Assembly (NCBI GenBank): GCA_002269645.1
Contig: NIVC01004232.1
Location: 1-53,940, forward strand
Direction: 5' to 3'
Length of the DNA stretch: 53,940 nucleotides
Source of the DNA: Macrostomum lignano
Taxonomy: Eukaryota
The notes below the pieces were generated by a model. That model ran no database searches and was not told the origin of the DNA. It worked only from the letters and a program-made list of their open reading frames with translations. Shown piece after piece: positions 8,473 through 41,686 of the stretch. Within the stretch, counting starts at the first letter, position 1. Each line of letters starts with the position of its first letter. Both the position numbers and the translations under genes were made by a program.

Positions 8473-9233
8473 CTAGCTCGGATCGAGAGCAATCGAGTGG
8501 CGCTACCGGCACGTCAGTCAGACGGAAGCATGATTTTGATAGACAAATGCAGTGTCTAATCATCGGCTTACTTTTTTAAAGATCTATCGGCCTATCGATG
8601 ACCTACTGGTGGTTAGAATTTAATCAAGACGTTTTTGGAAATGTCGCTTAACCCATAAAAAACACTACTGAGATACTGAGATATGAGACTTACTTATTTT
8701 CTCAACACAAAAATACGAGCCCGTAGCAACAGTTCTTAAAGAAAGCCTTAAAATCTTTTCTACGTAATGTCCCTGAAATTAATTAGCAACGAGATGCAAT
8801 TCTGATTACGGGGGCACGTTAACACAGGTCCTGAGCTGGCTAAAACTTTGAAAACTAACACTAACCTTGGGACCGGACTGCTGGCTGGACCTAGTCCACA
8901 TAATTAATAGCACTTCTGGGACAGTCGGATAAAATCAAATAAGCCATAAACAAGGTAACACGAAAAAACTTTTTTTTTCACTTCAATTCACGAAAGACTC
9001 GCGAAGCCCTCGTCTATTTTCGGGCAGATTTTTCATTATTTCCCAAAGAAAAACTCAGGGAAAATTTTAGAAAAAGGGCAGAACGCGCAAGAAACGCCAG
9101 TCGCTAAACTTTGCTTACTATTTTTTGTTTCAGTGAATTTTTCTCTTTTTTATACTCGTATCAGAATGCGATTTTGCAACTTTTTCATATGGTCTCCCCG
9201 CGTGAAGAACTAGCTGCAGAGCACACGCAGAGC

Positions 9234-10010
9234 CTAGCCAATCAGAAAGCAGTCGCCAATAGCCAACACAGTTGGCGACTCGTCTGGGATCAGCTGTTGC
9301 AATCGTTGAACACTGCTGGAACTGGCGTGGCCAAACTGCTGCTGCTGCTGTTCCGGCTGTACTGGGCGATGCCGCTGAGTTCCGGACAGCCGGCGCACGT
9401 AGCTGGCATCCGACTCCAGCTGGGCCAATAAAGCACGCAGCTTGCTAACCCGTCGGCGAGCTTTAATCTGAGCTATAGTGTTAGCCAGATAGGCCGCCGT
9501 CTCTGTTAGTATCTTGCGGTGCGTGGCCCGCTTAATGCCCTGCAGATTCGGCACGGCCGTCTGCAGCTTCCCATAAAGATCGATGAAGCGCTCTCGCCTG
9601 ACGCGCTCGCGATGATGCGAATAGGTCCGGTTGCTACCCGAGCCGCGGCTCGATTGGCGGCCGGCGCTGTTCTGCTGATTAGCGTCGTTTCCTCGAGCTC
9701 GTCCGGCGCCGTTTCGACGCCGCTGACGCCCGCAGCCGTTGGCGGCGGCTGCTGCCGCGGCGGCGGCCGCGAAAATCTCCGGATCGTTGACAAACTCGAT
9801 GCCGTCGTCGATGCGACCGCTGGTGCCAAGGAAAGCAGCGGCCGCGGCAGCCGCTTCAGCCTCGTTGCCGGCCGCAGCGACGTCCAGTTGGAATTCTTCA
9901 TCGTCGTATTCTGCCTCGTCATCTTCCTCCTCTTCGGGGTCAGAGTTGTCGCGAGGGCAGGCCTCGGACGATGACACGGAGCAGGCGCCGCTGTCTGACG
10001 TCAGGCTCAT
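9234..10010 (-). CDS. Intronless bHLH-leucine-zipper transcription factor, Myc/Max-network-like (258 aa)
   Basis: Basic-HLH RTYSHHRERVRRERFIDLYGKLQTAVPNLQGIKRATHRKILTETAAYL resembles Max ([26 protein letters not shown]) and Myc; N-terminal acidic tract; short zipper RRRVSKLRALLAQL. Confidence 0.8.
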   Translation of the reverse strand: MSLTSDSGACSVSSSEACPRDNSDPEEEEDDEAEYDDEEFQLDVAAAGNEAEAAAAAAAFLGTSGRIDDGIEFVNDPEIFAAAAAAAAAANGCGRQRRRNGAGRARGNDANQQNSAGRQSSRGSGSNRTYSHHRERVRRERFIDLYGKLQTAVPNLQGIKRATHRKILTETAAYLANTIAQIKARRRVSKLRALLAQLESDASYVRRLSGTQRHRPVQPEQQQQQFGHASSSSVQRLQQLIPDESPTVLAIGDCFLIG

Positions 10011-10700
10011 CCTTCCACTTCTGTGGGCGGGGTGGCGTTAGTCAACTTTAACTAAAAACCGACAAAAAGTTGTATCCTAGAACGGGAATTCCCCAGCTAA
10101 GTTTAGTGGCTACCGAACAGAGGGACGAAAGCGTGTATAAATACGAGTATTCGATGACACAGGCTAGTTAGTTGGGCAACCCGCCGCCAGCGAGCAGGTC
10201 AAGCAGTCACGGCAGTCATCGTCGGAAAGTGTGAAAACGCTCCGCACCTTGGGAGTTGGCCCTCAATAGAGACGTGTGCGTGGTCAAGCCCAGGTAATTT
10301 GGTGCGAGAATCAGATACGTTGCCGCGGTTACATTTGGTCTCTTGTGCCGTAGTACTCCTGTCTTATGACTAAGCAAAAATGCACCAACTTGTTAGCCTA
10401 AACACTAATAATAAATGAAAAGACAAAAAATAAAAAATCAGCAACGATAAAATTGATAACTTGACAGAACAGTGACTGTTCGCTTTGCTTTCTGAGCACG
10501 GTATAATATAGGTGAAGACTAAAGTAATCGGCATAAATCTAATGAGCAAAGGTGCTTGAGTAAACATGCTACATTACTCAAGTAGAATACAACAATACCA
10601 AGCAAAAGCATTTTCATCAGAAATTCAAAACAGCATATGACAATCTGTTTGCTAAAAATGACAAGTAGCTCGTATCAGAAATATCCTTCAGTCCCCTCAG

Positions 10701-11471
10701 TCACTGCCGGGCATCGGGCGGCCTTTCCCCGCCGGGAGACTCCAGCCGACTCTCCAGCCGTTCAAACTCTTCTCGGCCCAATCGCTCCAAGTCGTCCTCG
10801 TCGTCAACAGATTCAACGGCTTCCACCTCGGGTACGTAGAACTGCAGCATGTTCTGCACGCCCATCTTGAGTGTCACCGTGCTGCTGGGGCAGGAGGTGC
10901 AGGCGCCCTGCAGCTTCAGCCGGACAACTCCGCGTTTGTAGCCACGAAAGAGAATGTCGCCACCGTCTTCTTGAACTGTTGGCCGGATGCGAGTGTCTAG
11001 GAGCTCCTTGATCATTGCCACGGTGTCGGCGTCTTCTGGTGACACGGGCTCCTCCGTCTCGCCCGCAGCTCCGGCCGCATTGCCGCCAGCACTGTCCGAC
11101 TCTTCAGCAATGACCGGCTGTCCGCTAGCGTAGAAGTCCATGATGGCAGCGAAGGCCTCGGCTTTGATGACTTTCCAATCAGCAGAGTCAGCTTTGGTCA
11201 CTGTAACAAATTCCGGGCCAAGGAAGACGCCAGAGACGCCCTGGACGCGAAACAGACGCCTGGCCAGGGGCGACGCCTGCGCTGCTGACCGGCTGGGAAA
11301 GTCGCGAGTTGAACCAGCCGGCAGCACCTCTTTGCCAGGCAACAGCTTCACGCTGTTAGGGTTCGGCGTGTCCTCAGTCTGGATGAACAACAGGCGGCGG
11401 CCCAATGCTGAGAGCCAGGGCTGGCAATTCTGGGCTCGCAGCAGGCATTGACTTGCACGAGATGACAGCAT
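10701..11471 (-). CDS. NFU1: Mitochondrial NFU1 iron-sulfur cluster scaffold, intronless
   Basis: Transit-peptide-like N-terminus, [44 protein letters not shown] (CxxC). True ATG at 11471. Confidence 0.97.
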
Positions 11472-12714
11472 GGTAGCGTTGCTTAGCACTGAAGTTGAGT
11501 CATAATGCTATCAATGTAGAAACCTGTTGGCTTAGGCCTTAAGCACAATTAGTATTTTTATAATATCTGTAGATTTTAGCTTTATGTTCAAGCTTAATAC
11601 TTACTAGTAATAAGCAAAGCTTTTGAATCTTAAAATAAGTTTGAAGGAGATTTAACAGCAGATAGTAGTCCACTTTTCTGAAGGGTTATTTTAAATTTCA
11701 TATAAAACTGCAGTGTGTATTCTCACTAGAATAAAAATAGTTCTATAAATAAAAGTCATTTGCCATTAGTGTAATTAAGAGCCTTATCTTTAATATAGGC
11801 TAAAGTGTTTAGGCCTACAAAAATATAGTTAGGGTTAATAAAAATAATAAATAGGAAAAATGGGTTTTACCTTTTTTAAATATACACAAGCAATTTTTAA
11901 ATATATTAATATATATACACATAACTTTTGTGTCTAAATGTATAAGTATATTATCTTTATATTAGCATTATATCAAAATGATATACTCCACTTATCTATA
12001 GATATTATATAAGAAATTTGTTTGTTGCAGGGCCTAGGATTTAATTTATACACCTTACCTTTAACCCCCTAGTCAATAATTAGGCCTATCTACATAAAGT
12101 ATTACTACTATTAACTACTATTAGTAACACAATGAGCACTTGCATAGAATTTTACCTTTTTATTCAATTTTAAAATATGAAAGCTACTATTTCTTCTATT
12201 TTAGTTACATAGTTTTAATGAAAAAGATAACATCTATATACTAAAAATGAATATGTCTGTGTGTAAATGACAGCCTAGAAGAAAAATGGCTAGATGGATT
12301 TTCACCTGACTCGAGCCAATGGATTGGAAATATTATGCAGAGTGTCAATGTGGGGTTTAAATGTTTAATTTCAATTAAGAAATTGGTGAAAATGTACAAA
12401 AACCTGTTTTTCCTATCTAATTAGTGTATTTTTCTTGCAGCTAGTGAGAGCTCAATATGTCTATGGCCACAGACTAAACTTCAATTTCTTGAGCTGATGC
12501 TACAAGCTATAAATAATTAAATATTTCTCACAGTGAGAGCTCAATAAAATAATAATATGTCTATGGCCATAGAATAAGCTTCAACTTATTTAGCTGATGC
12601 TACAAGCTATAAATAATTAAATATGAGGATTCAAAAATATTTTGCATAAGGGAAAGATATCAGCCAATGCATTTTGAAAGTATTGAAGTAGTGCGCCACA
12701 ATGTCTGAGGGATA

Positions 12715-13210
12715 CTTTCTATCTGGAGGATGCTTGCTGTCAGGGGGATGCTTGCTGTCTGGGGGATGCTTGCTATCTGGGGGATGCCCACTGTCTGGGG
12801 ATGCTTGCTGTCAGGGGGATGCTTGCTGTCTAGGAGATGATTGCTTTCTGGGTGATGCTTGCTGTCTGGGGGATGCTTGCTGTTAGGGGGATGCTTGCTG
12901 CTATCTGGGGATGCTTGCTATCAAGGGGATGCTTGCTGTCTGGGAGATGCTTGCTGCTATCTAGGGGATACTTGCTGCTATCTGGGGGATGCTTGCTGTC
13001 TAGGGGATGCTTGCTACATTATATCATTACATTCTTTCTTTGCTCTGCTGTCTGGGGGGAGCAATGCTGTTTGGAGGATGCTTGCTATCTAGCTCTGGGG
13101 GATTGCTTGCTATCTAGGGGATGCTTGCTGTCTGGGTGCAAAGAGATTCGGGGGATTACAGGGGATGCTTGCTGTCTAGGGATGCTTGCTATCTGAGGGA
13201 TTGCTTGCTA
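12715..13210 (+). repeat. 18-bp minisatellite (unit 0)
   Basis: gatgcttgctatctgggg repeats. Confidence 0.9.
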
Positions 13211-13852
13211 CATTAAATAATTACATTCTTTCTTTGCTCCCCAATGGGGGACATACATTGCATAACAAACATCTTTGTCCCTGACAATTTTACTTGAATC
13301 CATTCCATATACTAAAAATGGTCTGTCGGTATGTGTGTGTGTGTATGTGTGTGTGTGTGATCGATTTTAGCAAAAACGGCTCAACCGATTTTCTTCGAAC
13401 TTGCACTGTTCGATCAGAAATTTTCCCGTGACAGTACATGCATCGTGGCTAAGAAATTGCTTGATGCTAAAGGGATTAAATATTCGAAAAACATGCTTTT
13501 TTGCAAAGGTCAAGCAGCTCTTTCGACTTGAAATGCATCGTAAGAATGCTAGCAGAAAAACTGACTGGTTGAATTCTGATTCTGAAATAGATTGCATCAC
13601 AATACACTTTATTTATCGTCTGTGTACTGGCTGAATTTGACACTCAATTGAATTGCGTCACAGCTTTGAGTGTGAAAGCATAGCGCAGTACTGAATTTAT
13701 ATTACGTAACCATATTGTAAACTTTCATAGACACTGGTACTGACTTGCCTAAGAAATTGATTATGTCATAACTGCTTCGTGAGACTTTTTACTCTACCTG
13801 ACTTGGTGTGAGTGTTGAATTATATAAGTGGTACAACATCACTGATAACTTC

Positions 13853-13950
13853 GATGAGAGCTAGCCTAGAGCTGAACAGACCAGACTGCTAATGCAGCGA
13901 CCTAGGTTCGAATCTAAGTAGTTTAAAAGTAGTAGTGTAAATTTTTTTAT
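13853..13950 (+). other. tRNA(Ser)-like Pol III module, degenerate (unit 1; homologues at about 17700, 21390, 25470)
   Basis: A-box-like tagcctagagc, anticodon-loop-like gactgctaat (GCT), B-box ggttcgaatc, downstream T7 run. Not a complete cloverleaf. Confidence 0.55.
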
Positions 13951-13984
13951 TAAAAGGTTTTATTAAAGGACTAAATAAAAACAC

Positions 13985-16465
13985 TTAGATTACTGCACTC
14001 GATAAGCCAAGGATTATTGCTATTAATAAACCAAGGACTACTGCACTCGATAAACCAAGGACTATTGCTCTTGGCAAACCAAGGATTACTGCACTCAAGA
14101 AGCCAAGGATTATTGCTATTAATAAACCAAGGATTACTGCACTTGGAAAACCAAGGATTACTGCACTCGATAAACCAAGGACTATTGCTCTTGGCAAACC
14201 AAGGATTACTGCACTCAGGAAGCCAAGGATTATTGCACTTGGAAAACCAAGGATTACTGCACTCGATAAACCAAGGACTATTGCTCTTGGCAAACCAAGG
14301 ATTACTGCACTCAAGAAGCCAAGGATTATTGCTATTAATAAACCAAGGATTACTGCACTTGGAAAACCAAGGATTACTGCACTCGATAAACCAAGGACTA
14401 TTGCTCTTGGCAAACCAAGGATTACTGCACTCAAGAAGCCAAGGATTATTGCACTTGGAAAACCAAGGATTACTGCACTCGATAAACCAAGGACTATTGC
14501 ACTTGATAAACCAAGGAATATTGCACTTGATAGGCCAAGGATTACTGCACTTGATAAACCAAGGATTATTGCACTTGATAGGCCAAAGATTACTGCGCTT
14601 GATAAACCAAGGATTATTGCACTTGATAAACCAAGGATTATTGCACTTGATAAGCCAAGGATTACTGCGCTTGATAAACCAAGGATTATTGCACTTGATA
14701 AACAAAGGATTATTGCACTTGATAAACAAAGGATTATTGCACTTGATAAACAAAGGATTATTGCACTTGATAAACCAAGGATTATTGCACTTGATAAGCC
14801 AAGGATTATTGCACTTGATAAGCCATGGATTATTGCACTTGATAGTAAAGAATGTTGCACTTGATAAGCCAAGGATTAATGCACTGGATTATTCAAGGAT
14901 TATTGATATTAATAAACCAAGGACTACTCCACTCGATAAACCAAGGATTATTGCTCTTAATAAACCAAGGATTACTGCACTTGGAAAACTAAGGATTACT
15001 GCACTCGATAAACCAAAGACTATTGCACTTGATAAACCAAGGATTATTGCACTTGATAGGCCAAGGATTACTGCACTTGATAAACCAAGGATTATTGCAC
15101 TTGATAGGCCAAAAATTACTGCGCTTGATAAACCAAGGATTATTGCACTTGATAAACCAAGGATTATTGCACTTGATAAGCCAAGGATTATTGCACTTGA
15201 TAAACCAATGATTATTGCAGTTGATAAGCCAAGGATTATTGCATCTGATAAACCAAAGATTATTGCACTTGATAAACCAAGGATTATTGCACTTGATAAA
15301 CAAAGGATTATTGCACTTGATAGGCCAAAGATTACTGCGCTTGATAAACCAAGGATTATTGCACTTGATAAACCAAGGATTATTGCACTTGATAAGCCAA
15401 GGATTATTGCACTTGATAAACCAAGGATTATTGCAGTTGATAAGCCAAGGATTATTGCATCTGATAAACCAAGGATTATTGCACTTGATAAACCAAGGAT
15501 TATTGCACTTGATAAACCAAGGATTATTGCACTTGATAAACCAAGGATTATTGCTCTTGGCAAACCAAGGATTACTGCACTCGATAAGCCAAGGATTATT
15601 GCTCTTAATAAACCAAGGATTACTGCACTTGGAAAACTAAGGATTACTGCACTCGATAAACTAAGGATTATTGCTCTTGGCAAACCAAGGATTATTGCAC
15701 TTGATAGGCCAAGGATTACTGCACTTGATAAACCAAGGATTATTGCACTTGATAAACCAAGGATTATTGCACTTGATAAGCCAAGGATTATTGCACTTGA
15801 TAGGCCAAGGATTACTGCGCTTGATAAACCAAGGATTATTGCACTTGATAAACCAAGGATTATTGCAGTTGATAAGCCAAGGATTATTGCACTTGATAAA
15901 CCAAGGATTATTACACTTGATAAACCAAGGATTATTGCACTTGATAAACCAAGGATTATTGCACTTGATAGGCCAAGGATTACTGCACTTGATAAACCAA
16001 GGATTATTGCACTTGATAGGCCAAAGATTACTGCGCTTGATAAACCAAGGATTATTGCAGTTGATAAGCCAAGGATTATTGCACTTGATAAACCAAGGAT
16101 TATTTCACTTGATAAACCAAGGATTATTGCACTTGATAAACAAATATTGCACTTGATAAACCAAGGATTATTGCACCTGATAAGCCAAGGATTACTGCGC
16201 TAGATAAACCAAGGATTATTGCACTTAATAAACCAAGGATTATTGCACTTAATAAACCAAGGATTATTGCACTTGATAAACCAAGGATTATTGCACTTGA
16301 TAAACAAAGGATTATTGCACTTGATAAACCAAGGATTATTGCACTTTATAAGCCAAAGATTACTGCACTTGATAAACCAAGGATTATTGCACTTGATAAA
16401 CCAAGGATTATTGCACTTGATTAATCAAGGATTATTGCTATTAATAAACCAAGGATTATTGCACT
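13985..16465 (+). repeat. 24-bp satellite (unit 1)
   Basis: About 100 copies of ccaaggattattgcacttgataaa. Confidence 0.97.
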
Positions 16466-16589
16466 AGCTGAGAAGCTGATTACTGCGCTGTCTAAAAAAG
16501 AGATTATTGCGCTCGCTGAGACGTGAATTGTTGCACAACCTGAGAAAGCGATTATTGCATTAGCGGAAGTAACATTTGCACTAGCTACT

Positions 16590-16990
16590 TGCTGTCTCGT
16601 GGATGCTTGCTCTCGAGGGGGGATACTTGCTATTTGGGAGAGGGGGTACTGGCTACATGCATGGGATTCTTTCTATCCAGGGATGCTTGCTATTCAGGGA
16701 TTCTTGCTATCTGCAGGATGCTTGCTATTTAGGGATTCTTGCTATCTGCAGGATGCTTGCTATCTGGGTGGATGCTTCTATAATATCTGGGGGGTGCTTG
16801 CTATCTGCAGAATGCTTCTATAATATCTGGGGGTGCTTGCTATCTGCAGAATGCTTGCTATCTGGGTGGATGCTTCTGGGGGGTGCTTGCTAATCTGCAG
16901 ATGCTTGCTATCTGTGGTGATTCTTGCTATGAGCATTAGAGGATGCTTGCTATCTGCGATTGTTCACTTTTGGAGGGGGTTGCTTGCTGT
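16590..16990 (+). repeat. 18-bp minisatellite (unit 1)
   Basis: Same family as 12715-13210. Confidence 0.88.
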
Positions 16991-17821
16991 CTTGGGAATA
17001 TTTTCTATTTAGGGAAACGATATTTTGTTGACTGTTTGTTAATTTTAGAGAAAAAGTGATTTTTTAATTTTGCAAACATCTTAGTCCGTGACAATTTTAC
17101 ACGAATAAGGTGATTTTTAAAATGTGAAGAAGGAATTAGTGTTTAAGAAAATGTGTTTTTTTATTGTTTTCCATGAACTATTTTTGCTCCTTTCTTATTG
17201 GGCGCCCCGAAGGGGGGCCGCACTAGATTGCTATCTGTATGTATGTATGTATGTATGTATATGGGTATGCGATTGATTTCAGAAAAAACGGCTCAACCGA
17301 TTTTCTTCAAACTTGCACCATTTGATCAGAAATTTTCCTGGGACGGTACATGCATCTTGGCTAAGAAATTGCTCAATTTTAAAGGGATTAAATATTCGAA
17401 AAACATGCTTTCTTGCAAAGGTCAAGCAAAATTTCGACTTGAAATGCATTGTAAGAATGCTAGAGAAAAAGCTGACTGGCTGAATTCTGATTGTGATAAA
17501 GATTGCATCACAACAAGTTGAAAACAGTGCCGAAGAAATGCACACACGACTTGATTTAAATTGCGTAACCAATATTGCTAACTCAAATTGAGACTGATAC
17601 TGGCTGACTGAGAAATTGATTATGTCATAACTTTTTACTTCAATTGACTTGCAGTAAGAATTGAATTATAAGGGCCACAATTCATGTTCTCCAATTGAAA
17701 AGAGATAGCCAAGATGCGAACAGAATGGAATGCTAATGTAGCGACCTGGGTTCGAATCTTAGTAGTGCAAAAGGATTTTTTTATCAAAACACCTTAAAAA
17801 CACAACAAAACTGCTAAACAT

Positions 17822-20400
17822 AATAGAAGCGCAATGTCAAACATAGAAGAGCCACCATGTCAAACATAGAAGAGCCACTATGTCAAACCTAAACAAGCCA
17901 CCACGTCTAACATTTAAGAGCCACCATGTCAAACATTTAGGAGCCACCATGTCAAACATTTAAGAGCCACCATCTCAAACATAAAAGAGCCACCATGTAA
18001 AACATAAAAGAGCCACCATGTCAGACATTAAAAGCCACCGTGTCAAACATAAAAGAGCCACCAGGTTAAACATTAAAAGCCACCGTGTCAAACATAAAAG
18101 AGCCACCAGGTTAAACATTAAAGAGCCACCATGTCAAACAATAAAGAGCCACCATGTTGAACATAAAAGAGCTACCATGTCAAACATTTAAGAGCTACCA
18201 TGTCAAACATTTAAGAGCTACCATGTCAAACATTTAAGAGCCACCATGTCAAACATTTAAGAGCCACCAAGTCAAACATTTAAGAGCCACCATGTCAAAC
18301 ATTTAAGAGCCACCATGTCAAACATATATGTGATTTTATGTCAAACTTTAAAGAGCCACTATTTCGAACATTAAATAGCAACTTTGTCAAACATTAGAGA
18401 GCCGCCGTGTCAAACATAAAAGAGCCACCAGGTTAAACATTAAAGAGCCACCATGTCAAACAATAAAGAGCCACCATGTCAAACATAGAAGAGCCACCAT
18501 GTCAAACATAAAAGAGCCACCATGTCAGACATTAAAAAGCCACCGTATCAAACATAAAAGAGTTACCATGTAGAACATTAAAGAGCCACCATTTCAAACA
18601 TTAAAGAGCCACCATTTCAAACATAAAAGAGCCACCATTTCAAACATTAAAGAGCCACCATGTCGAACATAAAAGAGCCACCATGTCAAACATAAAAGAG
18701 CCACCATTTCAAACATTAAAAAGCCACCATGTCGAACATAAAACAGCCACCATGTAGAATATTAAAGAGCCACCATGAAGAACATTAAAGAGCCACCATG
18801 AAGAACATTAAAGAGCCACCATGTCAAACATTTAAGAGCCACCATAAAGAACATTTAAGAGCCACCATGTCAAACATTTAAGAGCCACCATAAAGAACAT
18901 TTAAGAGCCACCATGTCAAACATTTAAGAGCCACCATGTCAAACATTTAAGAGCCACCATGTCAAACATATATGTGACTTTATGTCAAACTTTAAAGAGC
19001 CACTATTTCAAACATTAAATAACCACTTTGTCAAACATTAGAGAGCCGCTGTGTCAAACATCAAAGAGCCACCAGGTTAAACATTAAAGAGCCACCATGT
19101 CAAACAATAAAGAGCCACCATGTCAAACATATATGTGACTTTATGTCAAACTTTAAAGAGCCACTATTTCGAACATTAAATAGCCACTTTGTTAAACATT
19201 AGAGAGCCGCCGTGTCAAACATAAAAGAGCCACCATGTCAAACAATAAAGAGCCACCATTTCAAACAAAGAAGAGCCACCATGTCAAACATAAAAGAGCC
19301 ACCATGTCAGACATTAAAAAGCCACCGTATCAAACATAAAAGAGTTGCCATGTAGAACATTAAAGAGCCACCATTTCAAACAGTAAAGAGCCACCATGTC
19401 AAACATAAAAGAGCCACCATTTCAAACATAAAAGAGCCACCATTTCAAACATTAAAAAGCCACCATGTCGAACATAAAACAGCCACCATGTAGAATATTA
19501 AAGAGCCACCATGAAGAACATTAAAGAGCCACCATGTCAAACATTAAAGAGCCACCATGTCAAACATTTAAGAGCCACCATGAAGAACATTTAAGAGCCA
19601 CCAAGTCAAACATTTAAGAGCCACCATGTCAAACATTTAAGAGCCACCATGTCAAACATATATGTGACTTTATGTCAAACTTTAAAGAGCCACTATTTCG
19701 AACATTAAATAACCACTTTGTCAAACATTAGAGAGCCGCCGTGTCAAACAGTAAAGAGCCACCATGTCAAACGTAAAAGAGCCACCATGTAGAATATTAA
19801 AGAGCCACCATGAAGAACATTAAACAGCCACCATATCAAACATTTAAGAGACACCAGGTTAAATATTAAAGAGCCACCATGTCAAACAATAAAGAGCCAC
19901 CATGTCAAACATATATGTGACTTTATGTCAAACTTTAAAGAGCCACTATTTCGAACATTAAATAGCCACTTTGTTAAACATTAGAGAGCCGCCGTGTCAA
20001 ACATAAAAGAGCCACCAGGTTAAACATTAAAGAGCCACCATGTCAAACAATAAAGAGCCACCATTTCAAACAAAGAAGAGCCACCATGTCAAACATAAAA
20101 GAGCCACCATTTCGAACATTAAAGAGCCACCATTTCAAACAGTAAAGAGCCACCATGTCAAACATAAAAGAGCGACCATGTCAAACATTAAAAAGCCACT
20201 TTGTCTAACATTAAAGAGCCACCATGTCAAACATAAAAGAGCCACCATGTCAAACATAAAAGAGCCACCATGTCAAACAATAAAAAGCCACTTTGTCTAA
20301 CATTAAAGAGCCACCATGTCAACTTAAAAGAGCCACCATGTCATCATAAAAGAGCCACCATGTCAAACAATAAAGAGCCACCGTGTCAAACATAAAAGAT
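17822..20400 (+). repeat. 22-bp satellite (unit 2) with a recurring variant block
   Basis: aaagagccaccatgtcaaacat repeats; variant block catatatgtgactttatg recurs near 18320, 18965, 19125, 19655, 19910. Confidence 0.97.
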
Positions 20401-20479
20401 ACACAATTTCCAACGTAAAAGTAAGCGAATTTTAAAGGAGCCACTATAATGCTAAGGAAATTGTCGCACTAGCTACTTA

Positions 20480-20760
20480 TTGTCTGGTGGATGCTTGCTA
20501 TTTGGGGATGCTATCTATCTGGGGGATGCTTGCTCTCTGGAAGATGCTTGCTATCTGGGGGATGCTTGCTATCTGGGGGATGCTTGCTATCTGGGGGAAG
20601 CTTGCTATCTTGGGGATGCTTGCTATCTGGGGGATGCTGGCTATCTGGGGGATGCTTGCTATCTGGGGGAAGCTTGCTATCTTGGGGATGCTTGCTATCT
20701 GGGGGATGCTAGCTATCTGGGGGATGCTTGCTATCTGGGGGATGCTTGCTGTCTTGGGAT
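20480..20760 (+). repeat. 18-bp minisatellite (unit 2)
   Basis: Homogeneous gatgcttgctatctgggg. Confidence 0.92.
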
Positions 20761-21524
20761 GATTTCTTTTTGCATTGCACTTCATTTAAGTATTTTGTCT
20801 GTTTTCTTTGTGATTGTGAATGCTTTATTTGGCTATCTTTTTGTTACTTGTAGAGAGCAGAGATTCTATACAGATGTCCCCCAACGGGGGGCGAATATTG
20901 CTAGTCATATCCAATATACTAAAAATGGTCTGTCTGTGTCTATGTGATCGATTAGAGAAAAAATGGCTGGACCGATTTTGTTCGAACTTGCACTGTTCGA
21001 TCAGAAATTTTCCCGTGACGGTACATGCATCGTGGCTAAGAAATTGCTCGATGCTAAAGGCATTAAATATTCGAAAAACATGCTTTTTTGCAAAGGTCAA
21101 GCAAACTTTTCGACTTGAAATGCATTGTAAGAATGCTAGAGAAAAAACTGACTGGTTGAATTCTGATTCTGAAATGATTGCATCATAACTGAATTGTAAC
21201 TCCGACTTGAATTGAAAATGCAGTGTGAAGCGTAGCACCAGACTTGATTTAAATTGCGTAACCATATTGTTAACTGATACTGACTGACTGAGAAACTGAT
21301 TATGTCATAACTGCTTCGTGTGATTTACTCTATGCTTGGATTTTAAAGTGTTGAATTATATAAGTGCAAAATTTGATGTTATCAAAACGATGAGAGCTAG
21401 CCTAGAGGTGTACAAACTGAACTGCTAAATGCAGTTTGGTTCAAATTGGTTCGAATTTTCATAGAGTATAATTTTTTTAATTAAAGCTTTTCAACGTCAG
21501 GAAAACTAAAAGACTTTTTAAAAA

Positions 21525-23800
21525 GAAGCGTCATATAAAAATCATAGAAGCGTCATGTAAAAAATCATAGAAGCGTCATTTAAAAAATCATAGAAGCGTC
21601 ATATAAAAATCATAGATGCGTCATTTAAAAAATCATAGAAGCGTCATGTAAGCAATCATAGAAGCGTCATGTAAACAATCATAGAAGCGTCATGTAAAAA
21701 ATCATAGAAGCGTCATGTAAACAATCGTAGAAGCGTCAATTAAAAATCATAGATGCGTCATTTAAAAATACATAGAAGCGTCATGTAAAAAATCATAGAA
21801 GCGTCATGTAAAAAATCATAGAAGCGTCATGTAAACAATCATAGAAGCGTCATTTAAAAATCATAGAAGCGTCATTTAAAAAATCATAGAAGCGTCATAT
21901 AAAAATCATAGATGCGTCACTTAAAAAATCATAGAAGCGTCATACAAAAATCATAGAAGCGTCATTTAAAAAATCATAGAAGCGTCATGTAAACAATCAT
22001 AGAAGCGTCATGTAAACAATCATAGAAGCGTCATGTAAACAATCATAGAAGCGTCATGTAAACAATCATAGAAGCGTCATAAAAAATCATAGAAGCGTCA
22101 TTTAAAAAATCATAGAAGCGTCATTTAAAAAATCATAGAAGCGTCATGTAAACAATCATAGAAGCGTCATGTAAACAATCATAGAAGCGTAATGTAAAAA
22201 ATCATAGAAGCGTCATGTAAACAATCGTAGAAGCGTCATGTAAACAATCATAGAAGCGTCATGTAAACAATCATAGAAGCGTCATGTAAAAAATCATAGA
22301 AGCGTCATGTAAAAAATCATAGAAGCGTCATGTAAGCAATCATAGAAGCGTCATTTAAAAATCATAGAAGCGTCATTTAAAAAATCATAGAAGCGTCATA
22401 TAAAAATCATAGATGCGTCACTTAAAAAATCATAGAAGCGTCATACAAAAATCATAGAAGCGTCATTTAAAAAATCATAGAAGCGTCATGTAAACAATCA
22501 TAGAAGCGTCATGTAAACAATCATAGAAGCGTCATGTAAACAATCATAGAAGCGTCATGTAAACAATCATAGAAGCGTCATACAAAAATCATAGAAGCGT
22601 CATTTAAAAAATCATAGAAGCGTCATTTAAAAAATCATAGAAGCGTCATGTAAACAATCATAGAAGCGTCATGTAAACAATCATAGAAGCGTCATGTAAA
22701 AAATCATAGAAGCGTCATGTAAACAATCGTAGAAGCGTCATGTAAACAATCATAGAAGCGTCATGTAAACAATCATAGAAGCTTCATGTAAAAAATCATA
22801 GAAGCGTCATGCAAACAATCATAGAAGCGTCATGTAAACAATCATAGAAGCGTCATGTAAACAATCATAGAAGCGTCATGTAAAAAATCATAGAAGCGTC
22901 ATGTAAACAATCGTAAAAGCGTCAATTAAAAATCATAGATGTGTCATGTAAACAATCATAGAAGCGTCATGTAAACAATCATAGAAGCGTCATGTAAACA
23001 ATCATAGAAGCTTCATGTAAACAATCATAGAAGCGTCATGTAAAAATCATAGAAGCGTCAAGAAAAAAATCATAGAAGCCTCATTTAAAAAATCATAGAA
23101 GCGTCATGTAAAAAATCATAGAAGCGTCATGTAAACAATCATAGAAGGGTCATTTAAAAATCATAGAAGCGTCATGTAAAAAATCATAGAAGCGTCATGT
23201 AAACAATCATAGAAGCTTCATGTAAAAAATCATAGAAGCGTCATGTAAACAATCATAGAAGCGTCATGTAAACAATCATAGAAGCGTCATGTAAACAATC
23301 ATAGAAGCGTCATGTAAACAATCATAGAAGCGTCATGTAAACAATCATAGAAGCGCCATGTAAACAATCATAGAAGCGTCATGTAAAAAATCATAGAAGC
23401 GTCATGTAAACAATCATAGAAGCGTCATGTAAACAATCATAGAAGCTTCATGTAAAAAATCATAGAAGCGTCATGTAAACAATCATAGAAGCGTCATGTA
23501 AACAATCATAGAAGCGTCATGTAAACAATCATAGAAGCGTCATGTAAACAATCATAGAAGCGCCATGTAAACAATCATAGAAGCGTCATGTAAAAAATCA
23601 TAGAAGCGTCATGTAAAAAATCATAGAAGCGTCATGTAAACAATCATAGAAGCGTCATGTAAACAATCATAGAAGCGTCATGTAAACAATCATAAAAGCG
23701 TCATGTAAACAATCATAGAAGCTTCATGTAAAAAATCATAGAAGCGTCATGTAAAAATCATAGAAGGGTCAAGAAAAAATCATAGAAGCCTCATTTATAA
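21525..23800 (+). repeat. 23-bp satellite (unit 3)
   Basis: aatcatagaagcgtcatgtaaac repeats. Confidence 0.97.
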
Positions 23801-24702
23801 ACTAATGAAAGTGTCATTTAAAAAATTAAGAAGCGTCACGGTAGAATAAAAGAAGCATCATGTCAGACATGAAGGGTGTCATGTAAAAATTAAATGCAGC
23901 TATAATGCTGTGCTGGGGAGAAAAACTGAGACGTCAAGGCTCTCAGAGAATAACTGAGATTATGGGGGGGGGGGTTTCTGAGATGTCAAAGCAAAAGTCA
24001 GAAGCTACTTCAAAGTTCATGTACTTTACTCAATTTTTTTATTGCATTCTTTGTTGGCTCGCCATGGGGGGGCGCTGATAGAAGAAGAGTCATGTAAAAA
24101 ATAAAAGTAGCACTATGTATACATGAAAGAAAAGTCAGGTCGAAGTTAAAAGATTCATTTGGGAATTGCTACGATGTCAAAGCTTGGTGGAAATCGTTAT
24201 AGTGCTGTGATTCTTAAAGAAGGAATCACTAAAATGTCAAGGCTTAGGGGAGAAGAATTGCTGAGATTTCAAGGCTTTAGGTTGGGTTAAAGTTAGGTTT
24301 AGGTCAGGTGTGGGTTGAGGGTTATATTTTATCGGGTTTCAAGGTTAACAGAATAACAGGGGATTTTTAGATTTCAAGGTTTATGGGGGCTATCGCTGAC
24401 ATGTTAAGGCTTACGGGGGGGATAGCTGAGATGTCAAGGCTCACGGGGGTATAAATGAGATTTCAAGGCTAAAGTCAGAAGCTACATGTAGTTTATTGAA
24501 AACTTTTTATTACATTATTTGATGCCTCCTCAGGGGAGGGATCGCTGATAAAAAAGCGTAATGTAAAAAATAAAAGAAGCTTCATGTCGAAGTAAGAAAT
24601 TCATTTGGGAATCCCTACGATGTCGAGGCTTGCAGGGAATCGCTATAATGCTGTAGTAGTGCTATAATGACTCTTAGAGAGAATTACTGAAATTTCAATG
24701 CT

Positions 24703-24764
24703 TTAGGGTTAGGTTAGGGTTAGGGTTAGGGTTAGGGTTAGGGTTAGGCTAGGGTTAGGGTTAG
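24703..24764 (+). repeat. Interstitial telomeric repeat (TTAGGG)n
   Basis: About 10 TTAGGG or variant units. Confidence 0.92.
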
Positions 24765-25604
24765 AAGGTTGACAGATATTTTTAGATTTCCAAGACTTAT
24801 TGGGGGCATTGCTGAGATGTCAAGGGGGGAAGTTGATATGTTAAAGCTTGTGGGGGGGGGAATTACTGACATGTCAAGGCTTACAAGGTTTGACAGGAGA
24901 TTTTTTAAGATTTCAAGGATACATGTAGCTTATTAAAAAACGTGTATTGCATTTCTTTGGCTCCCCAACGGGGGGCGTAGATTGCTAGTCCAATATACTA
25001 AAAATGAAAATCTTGCTTGCTTGTAATCGATTAGAGAAAAAATGGCTTAACCGATTTTCATGAGACTTGCACTGTTCGATCAGAAATTTTCCCGTGACGG
25101 TACATGCATCGTGGCTAAGAAATTGCTCGATGCTAAAGGCATTAAATATTCGAAAAACATGCTTTTTTGCAAAGGTCAAGCAAACTTTTCGACTTGAAAT
25201 GCATTGTAAGAATGCTAGAGAAAAAACTGACTGGTTGAATTCTGATTCTGAAATAGATTGCATCATAACTGAATTGTAACTCCGACTTGAATTGAAAATG
25301 CAGTGTGGAAGCGTAGCACCAGACTTGATTTAAATTGCGTAACCATATTGTTAACTGATACTGACTGACTGAGAAACTGATTATGTCATAACTGCTTCGT
25401 GTGATTTACTCTATGCTTGGATTTTAAAGTGTTGAATTATATAAGTGAAAAATTTCATGTTATCAAAACGATGAGAGCTAGCCTAGAGGTGAACAAACTG
25501 AAATGCTAAATGCAGTTTGGTTCGAATTGGTTCGAATTTTCATAGAGTATAATTTTTTTAATTAAAGCTTTTCAACGTCAGGAAAACTAAAAGACTTTTT
25601 AAAA

Positions 25605-27560
25605 AGAAGCGTCATGTAAAAATCATAGAAGTGTCATATAAAAATGATAGATGCGTCATTTACAAAATCATAGAAGCGTCATATAAAAATCATAGATGCG
25701 TCATTTAAAAAATCATAGAAGCGTCATGTAAACAATCATAGAAGCGTCATGTAAACACTCGTAGAAGCGTCATGTAAACAATCATAGAAGCGTCATGTAA
25801 ACACTCGTAGAAGCGTCATGTAAACAATCATAGAAGCGTCATGTAAACAATCATAGAAGCGTCATGTAAAAAATCGTAGAAGCGTCATATAAAAATCATA
25901 GAAGCGTCATGTAAACAATCATAGAAGCGTCATGTAAAAAATCGTAGAAGCGTCATGTAAAAATCATAGAAGGGTCATGTTAAAAATCATAGAAGCATCA
26001 TTTAAAAAATCGTAGAAGCGTCATGTAAACAATCATAGAAGCGCCATGTAAAAAATCATAGAAGCGTCATGTAAACAATCATAGAAGCGTCATGTAAAAA
26101 ATCGTAGAAGCGTCATGTAAACAATCATAGAAGCGTCATGTAAAAAATCGTAGAAGCGTCATATAAAAATCATAGAAGCGTCATGTAAACAATCATAGAA
26201 GCGTCATGTAAAAAATCGTAGAAGCGTCATGTAAAAATCATAGAAGGGTCATGTTAAAAATCATAGAAGCATCATTTAAAAAATCGTAGAAGCGTCATGT
26301 AAAAAATCATAGAAGCGCCATGTAAAAAATCATAGAAGCGTCATGTAAACAATCATAGAAGCGTCATGTAAAAAATCGTAGAAGCGTCATGTAAACAATC
26401 ATAGAAGCGTCATGTAAACAATCATAGAAGCGTCATGTAAACAATCATAGAAGCGTCATGTAAAAAATAGTAGAAGCGTCATGTAAAAATCATAGAAGGG
26501 TCATGTTAAAAATCATAGAAGCATCATTTAAAAAATCGTAGAAGCGTCATGTAAACAATCATAGAAGCGCCATGTAAAAAATCATAGAAGCGTCATGTAA
26601 ACAATCATAGAAGCGTCATGTAAAAAATCGTAGAAGCGTCATGTAAACAATCATAGAAGCGTCATGTAAACAATCATAGAAGCGTCATGTAAACAATCAT
26701 AGAAGCGTCATGTAAACAATCATTGAAGCGTCATGTAAACAATCATAGAAGCGTCATGTAAAAAATCGTAGAAGCGTCATATAAAAACATAGAAGCGTCA
26801 TGTAAACAATCATAGAAGCGTCATTTAAACAATCATAGAAGCGTCATGTAAAAAATCATAGAAGCGTCATGTAAGCAATCATAGAAGCGTCATGTAAAAA
26901 ATCGTAGAAGCGTCATGTAAACAATCATAGAAGCGCCATGTAAAAAATCATAGAAGCGTCATGTAAACAATCATAGAAGCGTCATGTAAAAAATCGTAGA
27001 AGCGTCATGTAAACAATCATAGAAGCGTCATGTAAACAATCATAGAAGCGTCATGTAAACAATCATAGAAGCGTCATGTAAAAAATCATAGAAGCGTCAT
27101 GTAAACAATCATAGAAGCGTCATGTAAACAATCATAGAAGCGTCATGTAAACAATCATAGAAGCGTCATGTAAACAATCATAGAAGCGTCAATTAAAAAA
27201 TCATAGAAGCGTCATATAAAAATCGTAGAAGCGTCATGTAAACAATCATAGAAGCGTCATTTAAAAAATCATAGAAGCGTCATGTAAACAATCATAGAAG
27301 CGTCATGTAAAAAATCGTAGAAGCGTCATGTAAAAAATCGTAGAAGCGTCATGTAAAAAATCATAGAAGCGTCATGTAAACAATCATAGAAGCGTCATGT
27401 AAACAATCATAGAAGCGTCATGAAAAAATCATAGAAGCGTCATGTAAACAATCATAGAAGCGTCATGTAAACAATCATAGAAGCGTCATGAAAAAATCAT
27501 AGAAGCGTCATGTAAACAATCATAGAAGCGTCATGTAAACAATCATAGAAGCCTCATTTA
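25605..27560 (+). repeat. 23-bp satellite (unit 4)
   Basis: Same monomer as unit 3. Confidence 0.97.
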
Positions 27561-28369
27561 AAAACTAATGAAAGTGTCATTTAAAAAATTAAGAAGCGTC
27601 ACGGTAGAATAAAAGAAACGTCATGTCAGACATGAAGGGTTCATGTAAAAATTAAGTGCAACTATAATGCTGTGCTGGGGAGAAAAACTGAGACGTCAAG
27701 GCTCTCAGAGAATAACTGAGATTACGGGGGGGGGGTTCTGAGATGTCAAAGCAAAAGTCAGAAGCTACTTGAAAGTTCATGTACTTTACTCAATTTTTTT
27801 ATTGCATTCTTTGTTGGCTCGTCACGGGGGGGGCGCCGATAGAAGAAAAGTCATGTAAAAAATAAAAGTACCACTATGTATACATAAAAGAAAAGTCATG
27901 TCGAAGTTAAAAGATTCATTTGGGAATTGCTACGATGTCAAAGCTTGGTGGAAATCGTTATAGTGCTGTGATTCTTAAAGAAAGAATCACTAAAATGTCA
28001 AGGCTTAGGGGAGAAGAATTGCTGAGATTTCAATGCTTTAGGTTGGGTTAAAGTTAGGTTTACGTCAGGTTTGGGTTGAGGGTTAGATTTTATCGGGTTT
28101 CAAGGTTAACAGGGGATTTTTTAGATTTCTAGGTTTATAGGGGCTATTGCTGACATGGTAAGGCTTACGGGGGGAATAGCTGAGATGTCAAGGCTCACGG
28201 GGGTATAAATGAGATTTCAAGGCTAAAGTCAGAAGCTACATGTAGTTTATTGAAAACTTTTTATTACATTATTTGATGCCTCCTCAGGGGAGGGATCGCT
28301 GATAGAAAAAGCGTAATGTAAAAAATAAAAGAAGCTTCATGTCGAAGTTAAGAGATTCATTTGGGAAGG

Positions 28370-28430
28370 TTAGGTTAGGGTTAGGGTTAGGGTTGGGTTA
28401 GGGTTAGGGTTAGGCTAGGGTTAGGGTTAG
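28370..28430 (+). repeat. Interstitial telomeric repeat (TTAGGG)n
   Basis: Paralogue of 24703-24764 in unit 4. Confidence 0.92.
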
Positions 28431-28740
28431 AAGGTTGACAGATATTTTTAGATTTCCAAGGCTTATTGGGCATTGCTGAGATGTCAAGGGGGGAAGTTGA
28501 TAATATGTTAAAGCTTGTGGGGGGGGGTAACTGACATGTCAAGGCTTACAAGGTTTGACAGGAGATTTTTTAAGATTTCAAGGATACATGTAGCTTATTA
28601 AAAAAACGTGTATTGCATTTCTTTGGCTCCCCAACGGGGGGCGTAGATTGCTAGTATATACTAAAGTTGAAAATGTTTGTTTATATAATCTGCATCTCTT
28701 TTCAAAGTGTTTGACATACAGACATGGGATTTGCACCTTA

Positions 28741-28915
28741 CAGTGACCAATGCCACTTTATAGACAATGACCAATGCCACCTTACAGACAATGACCAATG
28801 CCACCTTACAGACAGTGACCAATGCTACCTTATAGACAGTGACCAATGCCACCTTACAGTCACTGACCAATGCCACCTTACAAACAGTGACCAATGCCAT
28901 CTTACAGTCAATGCC
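28741..28915 (+). repeat. 24-bp minisatellite
   Basis: About 7 copies of gtgaccaatgccaccttacagaca. Confidence 0.9.
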
Positions 28916-29814
28916 AAAAGATTGCAGTAACCTACCAATCATCATCATTTCACTAAAAACTAATAGTATTCTATTGCCCCTTCCTCCACTCACAAATCCA
29001 ATGATGGCCATATCAACGTATATATTAATAAATGCTATAAAAATGCTACAAATAGCATTTTGCCTCCATCGTTCTTTCCCGTACTAATACAAAATGCCAT
29101 ATCATAAAATCAGCATTCATACAAAATTTCTTATATATTATTTTTTACTCATTACACCTGGCCTACAGCAAGTGGCCAGAGTTATAGCCATTAGCACAGT
29201 TGTAGCTTTCTGCATGCAGTGCGCAATGTGTCTAAGGGCTGTATATAGATGAATAGTCTTTCATTAACTAAGGGAGCCACCACACCCACTTAGAGTTAGT
29301 TGATCGGTATGGTATATTAACATCTTATATTAGACAGATTAGAGGTATAATACAATTGAATAAGAAATTCGGAACTTGTTAAGGGCCATTGCAAAATTCA
29401 ATTGTAGAGAAGCCTTTTGGTTAAGGCTTTTTGCTTCTAATTTATTATAACTATACAGTACTCTGCAAGATATTCCACTAGATGGGACACTGGATGGGAG
29501 ATGGGTAGATGGGACACCCAGAGGGTGGGGGTACCACCTAGTTTATCTCATCTTGACTAGGCCTAAATGAAAGCTAGATATAAATTTATAAAAAGTATTT
29601 TCTCTTCTTTTATCTACAGTTTATATTTGCTTTTCTATTCTATATAGCCTAGAATAATTGCATTGCGGAATTATTTGATTGCAAAAAATCTAATTTTTAT
29701 TTAATTTTAGACCTATCTCTCAGATTCCCTGTACAACTATATGCATATTGGAAAGTAGGCCCTAAGACCCTCACTCACTCACTGAAGTCCCTACTCATAG
29801 TCATAGTCATAGCC

Positions 29815-29926
29815 GGCAATCTTCAAGTTTCGTTCGTTTAATTATTTCCGGAATTATTTTCGCCCTCTATTCAAGGGTGGTGGGGGGTGGGTGTTGGAAT
29901 TAAACGAACGAAACTTGAAGATTGCC
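29815..29926. mobile_element. 112-bp Merlin-family MITE
   Basis: 29-bp perfect TIR ggcaatcttcaagtttcgttcgtttaatt; 8-bp TSD tcatagcc (29807-29814 and 29927-29934). Confidence 0.88.
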
Positions 29927-30963: not shown

Positions 30964-31833
30964 GGCAATCTTCAAGTTTCGTTCGTTAAATTATTTTTTC
31001 GATGATTTCTGAATTATCTTGCTCTGAGATGATTATTTTCGAGTTCTCCAGTGTGCCCAGCCCTTTCCTAGTTGAGAAAGTAGCAGTTTTGTTAATATTA
31101 TATATCTAATGTACCGTAAAGCCGGAAATAGGCCTATAAGATGCAAACAAGCAAAGCTAACATGTAACGCTGAGTACAAACAGACAGAAATAGTAACACA
31201 GTGGGGTACAACAGGGGCAGTAGTAGCAGTCCAGTTCAGTAGCAACAGTTTAGCACATAGAACTTAATGCTTAGACATTATAGTAATGTGCGATCCAGTA
31301 TAGGATGTTCCCAAATGGATTGACAGGGTGCAGACGGCGCCATATGAACTCATCCAGGTAGGTTTCAAACAGGGCCTGTGATGTACCGTGCATTGCCCTT
31401 AGCTTGGCTGCAGCTGGTTGCACTTGTGCTACTGGTACAATAAAAGTGGGTGCCGCTGGTCGTCCTGGCATAGTGTATTAGTCTTATAGTGTATTAGCTG
31501 CTTGTCTATTAACTGCTTATGATACTACTCCATGCCACTCCTAAGGCTAAAGCTGCGTACAGTAGCATCTTTATTCCCCATAGACGTTCTTTGCTAAAAT
31601 GCCACGTCAGTGAAAGCCACGTCATCATTACGTTACCCTAATATGGGCCATAGACATTCCTTTGCCTACCAACGGCTTTACAGTACATTAGAAATATAAT
31701 ATTAACAAAACTGCTACTTTCTCAACTAGGAAAGGGCTGGGTACACTGGAGAACTCGAAAATAATCATCTCAGAGCAAGATAATTCAGAAATCATCGAAA
31801 AAATAATTTAACGAACGAAACTTGAAGATTGCC
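30964..31833 (-). mobile_element. Internally deleted Merlin (IS1595-related) DNA transposon, 870 bp
   Basis: 161-bp TIRs with about 3 mismatches starting GGCAA; 8-bp TSD actttata; internal minus-strand remnant MHGTSQALFETYLDEFIWRR...FGNILYWIAHYY resembles the Merlin/IS1595 transposase C-terminus. Confidence 0.88.
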
Positions 31834-41630: not shown

Positions 41631-41686
41631 TGTAAAGTATGGTTGTGTTAGAAATTTTAAATTAACGAGTCGCCACCTGGATTATT

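Follow-up and report, generated by a model that had tools for sequence, protein, structure and literature searches.

The stretch of DNA analysed here (hereafter the window) is contig NIVC01004232.1, 53,940 bp long, from assembly GCA_002269645.1, whose prefix NIVC denotes Macrostomum lignano Mlig_3_7. It carries genes for a bHLH and a Rab protein and, between them, a series of head-to-tail elements of one Helitron family that bear tandem-repeat arrays. Throughout, these elements are numbered as units 1-6 in order along 12233-28907; units 1 and 6 are old, and units 2-5 were inserted between them. A member of the Rab protein's cluster is annotated as BOX15_Mlig028542g3, a hypothetical protein of Macrostomum lignano. 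The host is a free-living flatworm in which many genome regions exist in several recently duplicated copies. These copies supplied empty sites and were decisive for the analysis.

The comparison covered ∼130 kb of the M. lignano genome, namely this ∼54-kb locus and its paralogous contigs. The bHLH gene occurs on three contigs, and a fourth encodes a variant of the neighbouring NFU1 protein. L004 (NIVC01004957.1) is 99.3% identical to window positions 1-17376, where it stops, and holds unit 1, unit 2 and the unit 2/3 joint. Two longer contigs, L002 (NIVC01000984.1, 497 kb) and L006 (NIVC01002523.1, 165 kb), align collinearly with it and are 96-99% identical. L005 and L007 are paralogs of the window's right half, and no further insertions of the Helitron family were found in them. 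Divergence among paralogs is 1-4%, and the window differs from its nearest paralog by 1.5% (26/1741).

Four units are missing from two paralogous contigs

Exactly positions 13299-28654 are missing from both L002 and L006, and both outer junctions are nucleotide-exact. The empty site in these contigs reads GACAATTTTACTTGAA/TATATACTAAAGTTG, i.e., CTTGAA/TATATAC or CTTGAA/TATATACTAAAG (here and below, a slash between bases marks a junction or insertion point). In the window, CTTGAA is followed by the insert, running from TCCATTCC to GATTGCTAG, and then by TATATAC, the right edge reading GGCGTAGATTGCTAG followed by TATATACTAAAGTTG. The insert starts with TCCATTCCATATACTAAAAATGG, ends with GGCTCCCCAACGGGGGGCGTAGATTGCTAG and is flanked by host A13298 and T28655. 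Since L002 and L006 lack precisely this segment, the insertion measures 15,356 bp and extends from 5′-TC to CTAG-3′ (28651-28654), at an A/T target and without target duplication.

L002 and L006 were the most divergent pair in each segment compared, the window always being nearer to one of them. As both are empty, the empty state is ancestral, and this shows that the composite was gained in the lineage that led to the window contig and to L004, its near-identical sister. Deletion from the paralogs by recombination between repeated ATATACTAAA motifs was rejected because the breakpoints lie at TC and CTAG, the termini themselves, and outside the repeat. In addition, the paralogs lack TCCATTCC and retain the T of the downstream copy, and two divergent paralogs are both empty.

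The first-pass annotation of this DNA had described five joined units in a 16.4-kb block at 12233-28654. The head-to-tail units are real, and host A at 12232 and T at 28655 are as it described, but its left edge was wrong: 12233-13298 is old and present in all copies of the locus, and only four units were inserted, within an older pair of degenerate copies. The empty A/T allele that it proposed looking for was found, in L002 and L006 for the composite and in the window for a second insertion described below.

Units 1 and 6 form this older head-to-tail pair of the same family. Only the first ∼110 bp of unit 1 are homologous to the head shared by the other units; it lacks a central satellite, holds an 18-bp GGGGATGCTTGCTATCT array at 12702-13210 and two 3′-like hairpin motifs, and has no CTAG end. 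Unit 6 consists of the 5′ end-like TATATACTAAAG followed by a 24-bp array (ACAGTGACCAATGCCACCTTACAG). All paralogs have it, and the composite inserted at its 5′ edge.

Table 1. Features of the window (TRF, Tandem Repeats Finder; coordinates are window positions).
Feature	Position	Strand	Description
bHLH protein gene	9234-10010	-	
Rab protein gene	48965-49621	-	Single exon
Unit 1	12233-13298	+	Old degenerate copy; 5′ start TCTATATACTAAAAATG; present in all four paralogous contigs
Composite insertion	13299-28654	+	15,356 bp; four head-to-tail units; absent from L002 and L006
Unit 2	13299-17233	+	5′ terminus; GTCT/GT microsatellite 13322-13360
Unit 2 head	13299-13987		T-arm-like motif and T-run 13893-13950
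Unit 2 satellite	13988-16465		24-bp GATTATTGCACTTGATAAACCAAG ×103.5 (TRF), decaying to ∼16575
Unit 2 tail			18-bp array ∼16580-17000; hairpin 17201-17219; degenerate 3′ end CACTAGATTGCTA (CTA, final G missing)
Unit 3	17234-20904	+	No 5′ terminal ATATACTAAAAATG; begins in (GTAT)n microsatellite
Unit 3 head	17234-17833		T-arm-like motif and T-run 17738-17790
Unit 3 satellite	17834-20399		23-bp ATGTCAAACATTAAAGAGCCACC ×111.7 (TRF)
Unit 3 tail			18-bp array 20483-20758; hairpin 20878-20891; CTAG 20901-20904
Unit 4	20905-24988	+	Start TCATATCCAATATACTAAAAATGG
Unit 4 head	20905-21523		T-arm-like motif and T-run 21440-21480
Unit 4 satellite	21524-∼23830		23-bp AGAAGCGTCATGTAAAAAATCAT
Unit 4 tail			Three sub-repeats, each ending in a hairpin-like motif; 29-30-bp repeats; (TTAGGG)n 24703-24764; terminal hairpin 24960-24976; CTAG 24985-24988
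Unit 5	24989-28654	+	Start TCCAATATACTAAAAATGA
Unit 5 head	24989-25589		T-arm-like motif and T-run 25520-25570
Unit 5 satellite	25590-∼27600		Same satellite as unit 4
Unit 5 tail			(TTAGGG)n 28368-28430; hairpin 28626-28642; CTAG 28651-28654
Unit 6	28655-28907	+	Old 5′ fragment, TATATACTAAAGTTGAAAATG; homologous to unit 5 5′ end, without TC
Isolated 5′ fragment	42829-42894	-	66 bp; TCCATATACTAAAAATGGTCAGTCGG + (CTAT)n + GTGATCGATTTT; also in L005 and L007
Minisatellites in flanking genes	3781-4192, 5869-6317, 37536-38101, 38794-39373, 40124-41632, 44497-44889, 45529-46107, 46479-46995		

The units are built on one chassis

The units share a fixed order of parts: a 5′ end TC(N2-9)ATATACTAAAAATG, a short GTCT/GT/GTAT microsatellite, a non-coding head of ∼560 bp with a T-run at its end, a long satellite at the centre (∼100 copies of 23-24 bp), another array (18 or 29 bp), and a short GC hairpin followed by 8 nt and CTAG. 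The runs after the 5′ motif are of GTCT, GT, GTAT or CTTG. Exact matches to ATATACTAAAAATG occur in the window at 12236, 13307, 20914 and 24993 and on the minus strand at 42877 (n=5, four of them in 12233-28654). The four heads of units 2-5 align over ∼600 bp with 74-78% identity between types and 95.8% for the last two, and a core of ∼230 bp reaches 87-93%. A shared head had thus been correctly recognised at the outset, but the unit at 12233 shares only its beginning.

The family 3′ end follows the pattern CCCCAACGGGGGGCG-N-CTAG. Searching for CCCC-N3-6-GGGG-N4-20-CTAG gave 5 overlapping matches, with 0.08 expected by chance; they fall on 4 sites, none of them outside the block. The L006 element (see below) and units 3-5 each have a GC stem of 5-7 bp that stops 8 nt ahead of CTAG. 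It is this recurrence at a fixed distance from CTAG, and not the individual folds, that exceeds chance. The TC..ATATACTAAAAATG starts and hairpin-N8-CTAG ends proposed by the first-pass annotation were therefore found, with hairpins that are individually weak.

Exact CTAG/TC joints lie at 20904/20905 and 24988/24989, where units 4 and 5 begin with TC directly after CTAG; only the latter joint had been pointed out before. The head-to-tail junctions are not all of this kind. At the unit 2/3 joint (17233/17234), CACTAGATTGCTA/TCTGTATG, the terminal G of unit 2 and the first ∼17-20 nt of the unit 3 5′ end are absent.

The elements are non-coding, and a protein-database search found no homologue of the head open reading frame (ORF). 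Comparison of the 5′ 60 nt with the 3′ 90 nt found no terminal or subterminal inverted repeats, the best inverted match being 6-7 nt, within the shuffled range. Neither a 23-mer from the head nor the 5′ motif had an exact match in metagenome contigs.

Unit 1 begins with A/TCTATATAC in L006 and the window, and with A/TCTTCTATATAC in L002 (window 12236; L002 reverse complement ∼13085). Because these orthologues differ there, the bases ahead of the ATATACTAAAAATG core vary by in-place slippage, which may explain the varied 5′ starts TCC, TCCA, TCCATTCC and TCATATCCA.

Each head ends in a T-arm-like GGTTCGAATC, with a D-arm-like AGCTAGCCTAGAGCT upstream, and then a run of 7 T. A tRNA or short interspersed element origin of the head end was rejected, as ARAGORN reported no tRNA, and Rfam searches at the gathering threshold and at E<=5 reported no family.

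A second insertion shows that single units are mobile

L006 holds an independent single-unit insertion of 4,245 bp at 3194-7438, of unit-3 type and in opposite orientation; L002 and the window (29625/29626) are continuous across this site. The empty site in the window reads GCAAA/TATAAACT. In L006, GCAAA is followed by the element, from TCCTATATACTAAAAATG to CCCCCAACGGGGGGCGAAGATTGCTAG (3′ end also GTCCCCCAACGGGGGGCGAAGATTGCTAG), and then by TATAAACT. The TC start TCCTATATAC lies at 3194 and CTAG, at 7435-7438, abuts the T of the empty site, with no duplicated bases. Two independent empty sites thus give an A/T target, 5′-TC, CTAG-3′ and no target duplication, which bears out the assignment of the elements to Helitrons made by the first-pass annotation.

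The L006 element is ∼94% identical to unit 3 in its body, and likewise in the head outside the 5′ microsatellite. The two have the same post-array segment and 18-bp array, their 3′ ends differ by 1 mismatch, and they carry the same 23-bp satellite, in 106.5 copies in L006 and 111.7 in unit 3. These near-equal lengths in independent insertions indicate that the ∼2.5-kb array is inherited cargo that was not regrown at each insertion. This shows that single units are mobile and carry the long satellite along. The first 793 bp of the L006 element (5′ end, head and ∼10 monomers) are present twice, at 3194-3986 and 3987-4779, with 99.6% identity. The duplicated segments are joined as ATTAAA/TCCTATATAC, giving an element with two 5′ termini.

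Satellite arrays differ between units and change in place

TRF placed the arrays of units 2-5 at the same position after the head, as previously claimed. The array after the head of unit 3, reported earlier as 22 bp, has a period of 23 bp. The 24-bp repeat of unit 2 showed no significant similarity to the other satellites. Its alignment to the chassis segment ATTGTCGCACTAGCTACTT behind the unit 3 array scored 11, a value reached by 23 of 500 shuffles, and a derivation from that segment is only suggestive.

The two 23-bp repeats have AGAAG..CATGT(C/A)AAA in common, a similarity reached by 9/300 shuffles, and monomers at the edges of the 23-bp arrays are intermediate between the two types. They look like diverged versions of one ancestral array that was homogenised separately in each subfamily. 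The earlier view of one chassis carrying a different satellite in each unit is therefore right as to the chassis and the differing arrays, but the two 23-bp satellites, being diverged relatives, are not wholly different cargo.

Outside the arrays, units 4 and 5 differ by 2.9% (46/1614; 2.3-3.2% substitutions beyond the first 30 nt), in addition to a block of 12 differences among the first ∼33 nt, and unit 5 has 14 fewer monomers. Their arrays are 92.8-93.0% identical in register and 91-92% when shifted, i.e., too homogeneous to call collinearity. The unit 6 array counts 7 copies in the window (28740-28907) and 24 in L002 (5017-5599), and has therefore expanded or contracted in place.

The role of satellite carrier that the first-pass annotation gave to this family is confirmed by two independent unit-3-type insertions with 112 and 106.5 monomers. 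Its other proposed role, that of satellite 'generator', we infer from the turnover between subfamilies.

About 10 telomere-type TTAGGG repeats lie in each tail of units 4 and 5 (Table 1), with a degenerate stretch at 24260-24330. As these runs lie inside unit tails, they are interstitial telomeric repeats carried by a transposon.

The elements resemble canonical Helitrons with a DINE-1-like layout

Canonical Helitrons have 5′-TC, 3′-CTRR and a palindrome ∼11 nt from the 3′ end, and insert at A/T without duplication (PMC4067079). In Helraiser experiments, A/TC and CTAG/T junctions, circles with exact TC-CTAG joints, and bypass of the 3′ end were observed (PMC4778049). The elements described here have a 5′ TC, a 3′ CTRR, a 3′ hairpin and A/T insertion without duplication, and lack terminal inverted repeats, as is typical of Helitron1. 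Like Helibat and Helraiser (PMC4778049, PMC4067079), they combine TC, CTAG, a palindrome ∼8-12 nt from the 3′ end and an A/T target with the absence of target-site duplications and terminal inverted repeats. They depart from canonical animal Helitrons in their hairpin (14-17 nt with loop, against the 16-20 nt usually quoted) and in their body, which is a fixed non-coding head plus two tandem arrays instead of captured gene fragments.

The general layout resembles that of Helentrons. Cg_HINE elements of the Pacific oyster (PMC7492417) also have a 3′ stem-loop, a central satellite-like array and, behind the 5′ end, a GTCY-type microsatellite; in some groups common flanks enclose unrelated repeats, and some elements have two consecutive arrays. 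Their authors regarded these elements as a means of tandem-repeat spread (PMC7492417). However, Cg_HINE has subterminal inverted repeats (subTIRs) of 11-12 bp and prefers TT targets, and its monomers are longer, in arrays usually of <=10 copies and up to ∼90 (PMC10048060), compared with ∼105-112 copies of 23-24 bp here. DINE-1/DINE-TR1 of Drosophila (PMC4067079), non-autonomous and noted for high copy potential, likewise has a terminus, microsatellite, conserved core, central repeats and 3′ stem-loop, but these are Helentrons, in which the target is TT, the subTIRs measure 13 bp and an inverted repeat lies close to the 5′ end.

Since Helentrons are defined by subTIRs and a TT or T-rich target (PMC4067079, PMC7492417), the 5′ microsatellite, central tandem repeats and 3′ stem-loop shared with our units, even though they reproduce the DINE-1/Cg_HINE plan down to a GTCY-type microsatellite, amount to a resemblance of layout only. 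The 11-15-bp subTIRs are absent, the 6-7-nt inverted match not exceeding what shuffled sequence gives, the ends are TC and CTAG, and the target in both empty sites is A/T and not TT. The defining features of a Helentron-type non-autonomous element (HINE/DINE-1-like, Helitron2 group), as known from oysters and Drosophila, are thereby lacking, and we regard such a classification as very unlikely.

Head-to-tail copies, and elements with duplicated 5′ termini, are known for FoHeli in Fusarium and Metarhizium (PMC5148889), and that source also cites tandem Helitrons or multiple 5′ termini for bat, Drosophila, rice and maize. Two explanations have been given, insertion into a resident 5′ end or rolling-circle over-replication (PMC5148889). 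Unlike in FoHeli, the units stacked here belong to different subfamilies with different satellites, and the first insertion by a resident 5′ end is documented by empty sites. The Helitron-linked Tyba satellite of Rhynchospora provides another case in which a Helitron is associated with the dispersal of satellite arrays; according to PMC10048060, Tyba is a repeat of plant holocentromeres for which a centromeric role has been proposed, whereas the flatworm arrays give no indication of a function.

Satellite-carrying Helitrons and Helentrons (PMC7492417, PMC10048060) and tandem Helitron insertions (PMC5148889) are thus already known. Particular to the present case are canonical termini combined with a DINE-1-like layout, arrays of ∼105-112 short monomers, heterologous stacking, and empty-site evidence from paralogs. 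In the searchable literature we found no account of satellite-bearing Helitrons from Macrostomum or any other flatworm.

Origin of the head-to-tail block

The block is best explained as four non-autonomous Helitrons of canonical (Helitron1) type. A RepHel rolling-circle transposase would move the elements in trans, and new copies would integrate at the A/T created where a host A meets the T with which a resident copy starts ('5′ stacking'). Since these two bases make up a canonical A/T target, insertion there would give exact CTAG/TC joints, and it would also leave 3′-truncated copies directly 5′ of full copies. Arrays would afterwards gain or lose copies in place, and concerted evolution would drive those of different subfamilies apart. 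We put the probability of this explanation as a whole, with the units either stacked at this locus or arrived together from a donor locus, at roughly 0.85.

The target of the composite was the A/T directly ahead of the 5′-end-like TATATACTAAAG of old unit 6. In the insert-free window, only 3 of 2,813 AT sites (×2 orientations) have a 5′ motif on the same strand <=10 nt downstream, and one of these 3 received the insertion. A 3′-truncated copy directly ahead of another 5′ end is found at unit 1/unit 6 and in the L006 element. That the composite landed exactly where an older copy begins suggests that units stack at the 5′ ends of resident copies. The first-pass annotation had proposed repeated insertion at the CTAG/T end or template switching; the documented target is instead the host A/T at the 5′ edge of the resident copy. 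Its exclusion of simple unequal crossover was borne out, as the units are only 74-78% identical and have different arrays. Going further, the family may prefer the 5′ boundary of resident copies through self-targeting by the transposase, and so stack satellite subfamilies into multi-satellite blocks; we offer this tentatively and consider it rather more doubtful than not.

Several observations weigh against this explanation. Single hairpins are weak folds (z -1.3 to -1.9 relative to shuffled sequence). The consistency of termini and cargo is judged from six 5′ ends and four intact 3′ ends, because ∼130 kb of genome were read. The imperfect unit 2/3 joint needs an extra deletion if units were stacked, and alleles holding some but not all of the units were not seen, which leaves serial stacking at this locus a proposal. 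Ahead of the isolated 5′ fragment at 42894 stands a T and not an A. No RepHel ORF or autonomous partner was found in the window or the fetched loci (∼130 kb). Finally, 17377-28654 is represented by this contig alone, and two 4-kb units of ∼97% identity are a typical site of assembly error.

This last point, together with the long homogeneous arrays, is what would favour an assembly artefact, that is, a chimeric join or mis-resolved repeat in all or part of the block. We judge it the least probable of the readings considered, since the 24-bp array in full and the joints on either side of unit 2 (1/2 and 2/3) recur in the independent contig L004 with 99.3% identity, the outer junctions agree base for base with the empty sites, and the single-unit insertion in L006 has the same architecture. 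Production of the units in place is also improbable, whether by unequal crossover or by rolling-circle over-replication of one circle, with later divergence and satellite replacement. In its favour, units 4 and 5 share 96-97% identity and keep the same order throughout except for 14 monomers, their exact CTAG/TC joint looks like a circle or concatemer junction, and the 793-bp 5′ duplication in L006, at 99.6% identity, shows that local duplication does occur. However, the heads of units 2, 3 and 4 are 74-78% identical with different arrays in a block younger than the 1-4% divergence among paralogs, so these units did not diverge in place. Duplication would account for the unit 4/5 pair at most, and even these two differ by the block of 12 changes near their 5′ ends.

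A serious competitor, falling a little short of an even bet, is that the composite was assembled elsewhere and arrived in one transposition, in place of four successive insertions at this nucleotide; the transposase would either have started at the 5′ end of unit 2 and bypassed three internal 3′ ends or have mobilised a pre-existing head-to-tail array. Both empty paralogs hold zero units and both filled contigs hold all the units that they cover, without an intermediate allele. Units 2 and 3 can only move together, as their joint lacks a usable 3′ end and a usable 5′ end. Units 4 and 5 had separated before the latest possible date of the insertion, since they differ more from each other (2.9%) than the window does from its nearest paralog (1.5%). 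Bypass of the 3′ end is moreover documented experimentally (PMC4778049). On the other hand, a 15-kb element would require three read-throughs of intact internal termination signals, single units move alone, as in L006, and a target at a resident 5′ edge is what stacking predicts for each step. A single arrival also only shifts assembly of the composite to another locus and does not replace the mechanism.

Neighbouring features

The genes flanking the block, MAP3K-like, PIG-M-like and a 794-residue gene without Pfam match, are full of 20-49-bp minisatellites that appear to be intronic (Table 1) and have no sequence kinship to the Helitron satellites. A 113-bp palindromic miniature element at 29815-29926, with ends GGCAATCTTCAAGTTTCGTTCG, is missing from L002 and L006. 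An 867-bp insert at 30966-31833 begins with the same end sequence and is missing from L002. With these two inserts, the intergenic region has another transposon family that is polymorphic, besides the Helitrons. In L002, old unit 1 contains an insertion of ∼900 bp with inverted-repeat-like ends (reverse complement 13401-14307, at the orthologue of window ∼12550). Its 122-residue ORF gave a weak match to a QRICH1 domain and no homologue in a protein-database search. Pfam searches with ORFs of the adjacent AT-rich DNA and the extra loci returned nothing useful and no RepHel.

Paralog divergence is mosaic. At 11490-12232 the window is nearer to L002 (1.35% vs 3.6%), and at 12233-12520 and 28910-29625 it is nearer to L006 (1.1-1.8% vs 2.5-3.7%). 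This switch of nearest paralog from segment to segment suggests recombination or gene conversion between the duplicated chromosome copies.

Implications

This locus provides a nucleotide-exact case, verified by empty sites, of Helitrons moving 2.5-kb satellite arrays as cargo, and of different subfamilies piling up at one nucleotide beside an older copy. Arrays of this length have not previously been reported in such elements, which usually carry <=10 copies and up to ∼90 in oysters. The paralogous copies (7 vs 24 monomers) and the independent insertions (112 vs 106.5) offer a natural experiment on how dispersed satellites originate and change. For M. lignano, the composites are likely sources of collapsed or mis-classified repeats in assembly and annotation, and the polymorphic insertions are handy markers in a genome with several recently duplicated chromosome copies. 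If self-targeting of 5′ boundaries is true, it would be a transposase-driven route to complex satellite loci of tens of kilobases, built one step per unit, and distinct both from unequal crossover and from simple concatemer formation.

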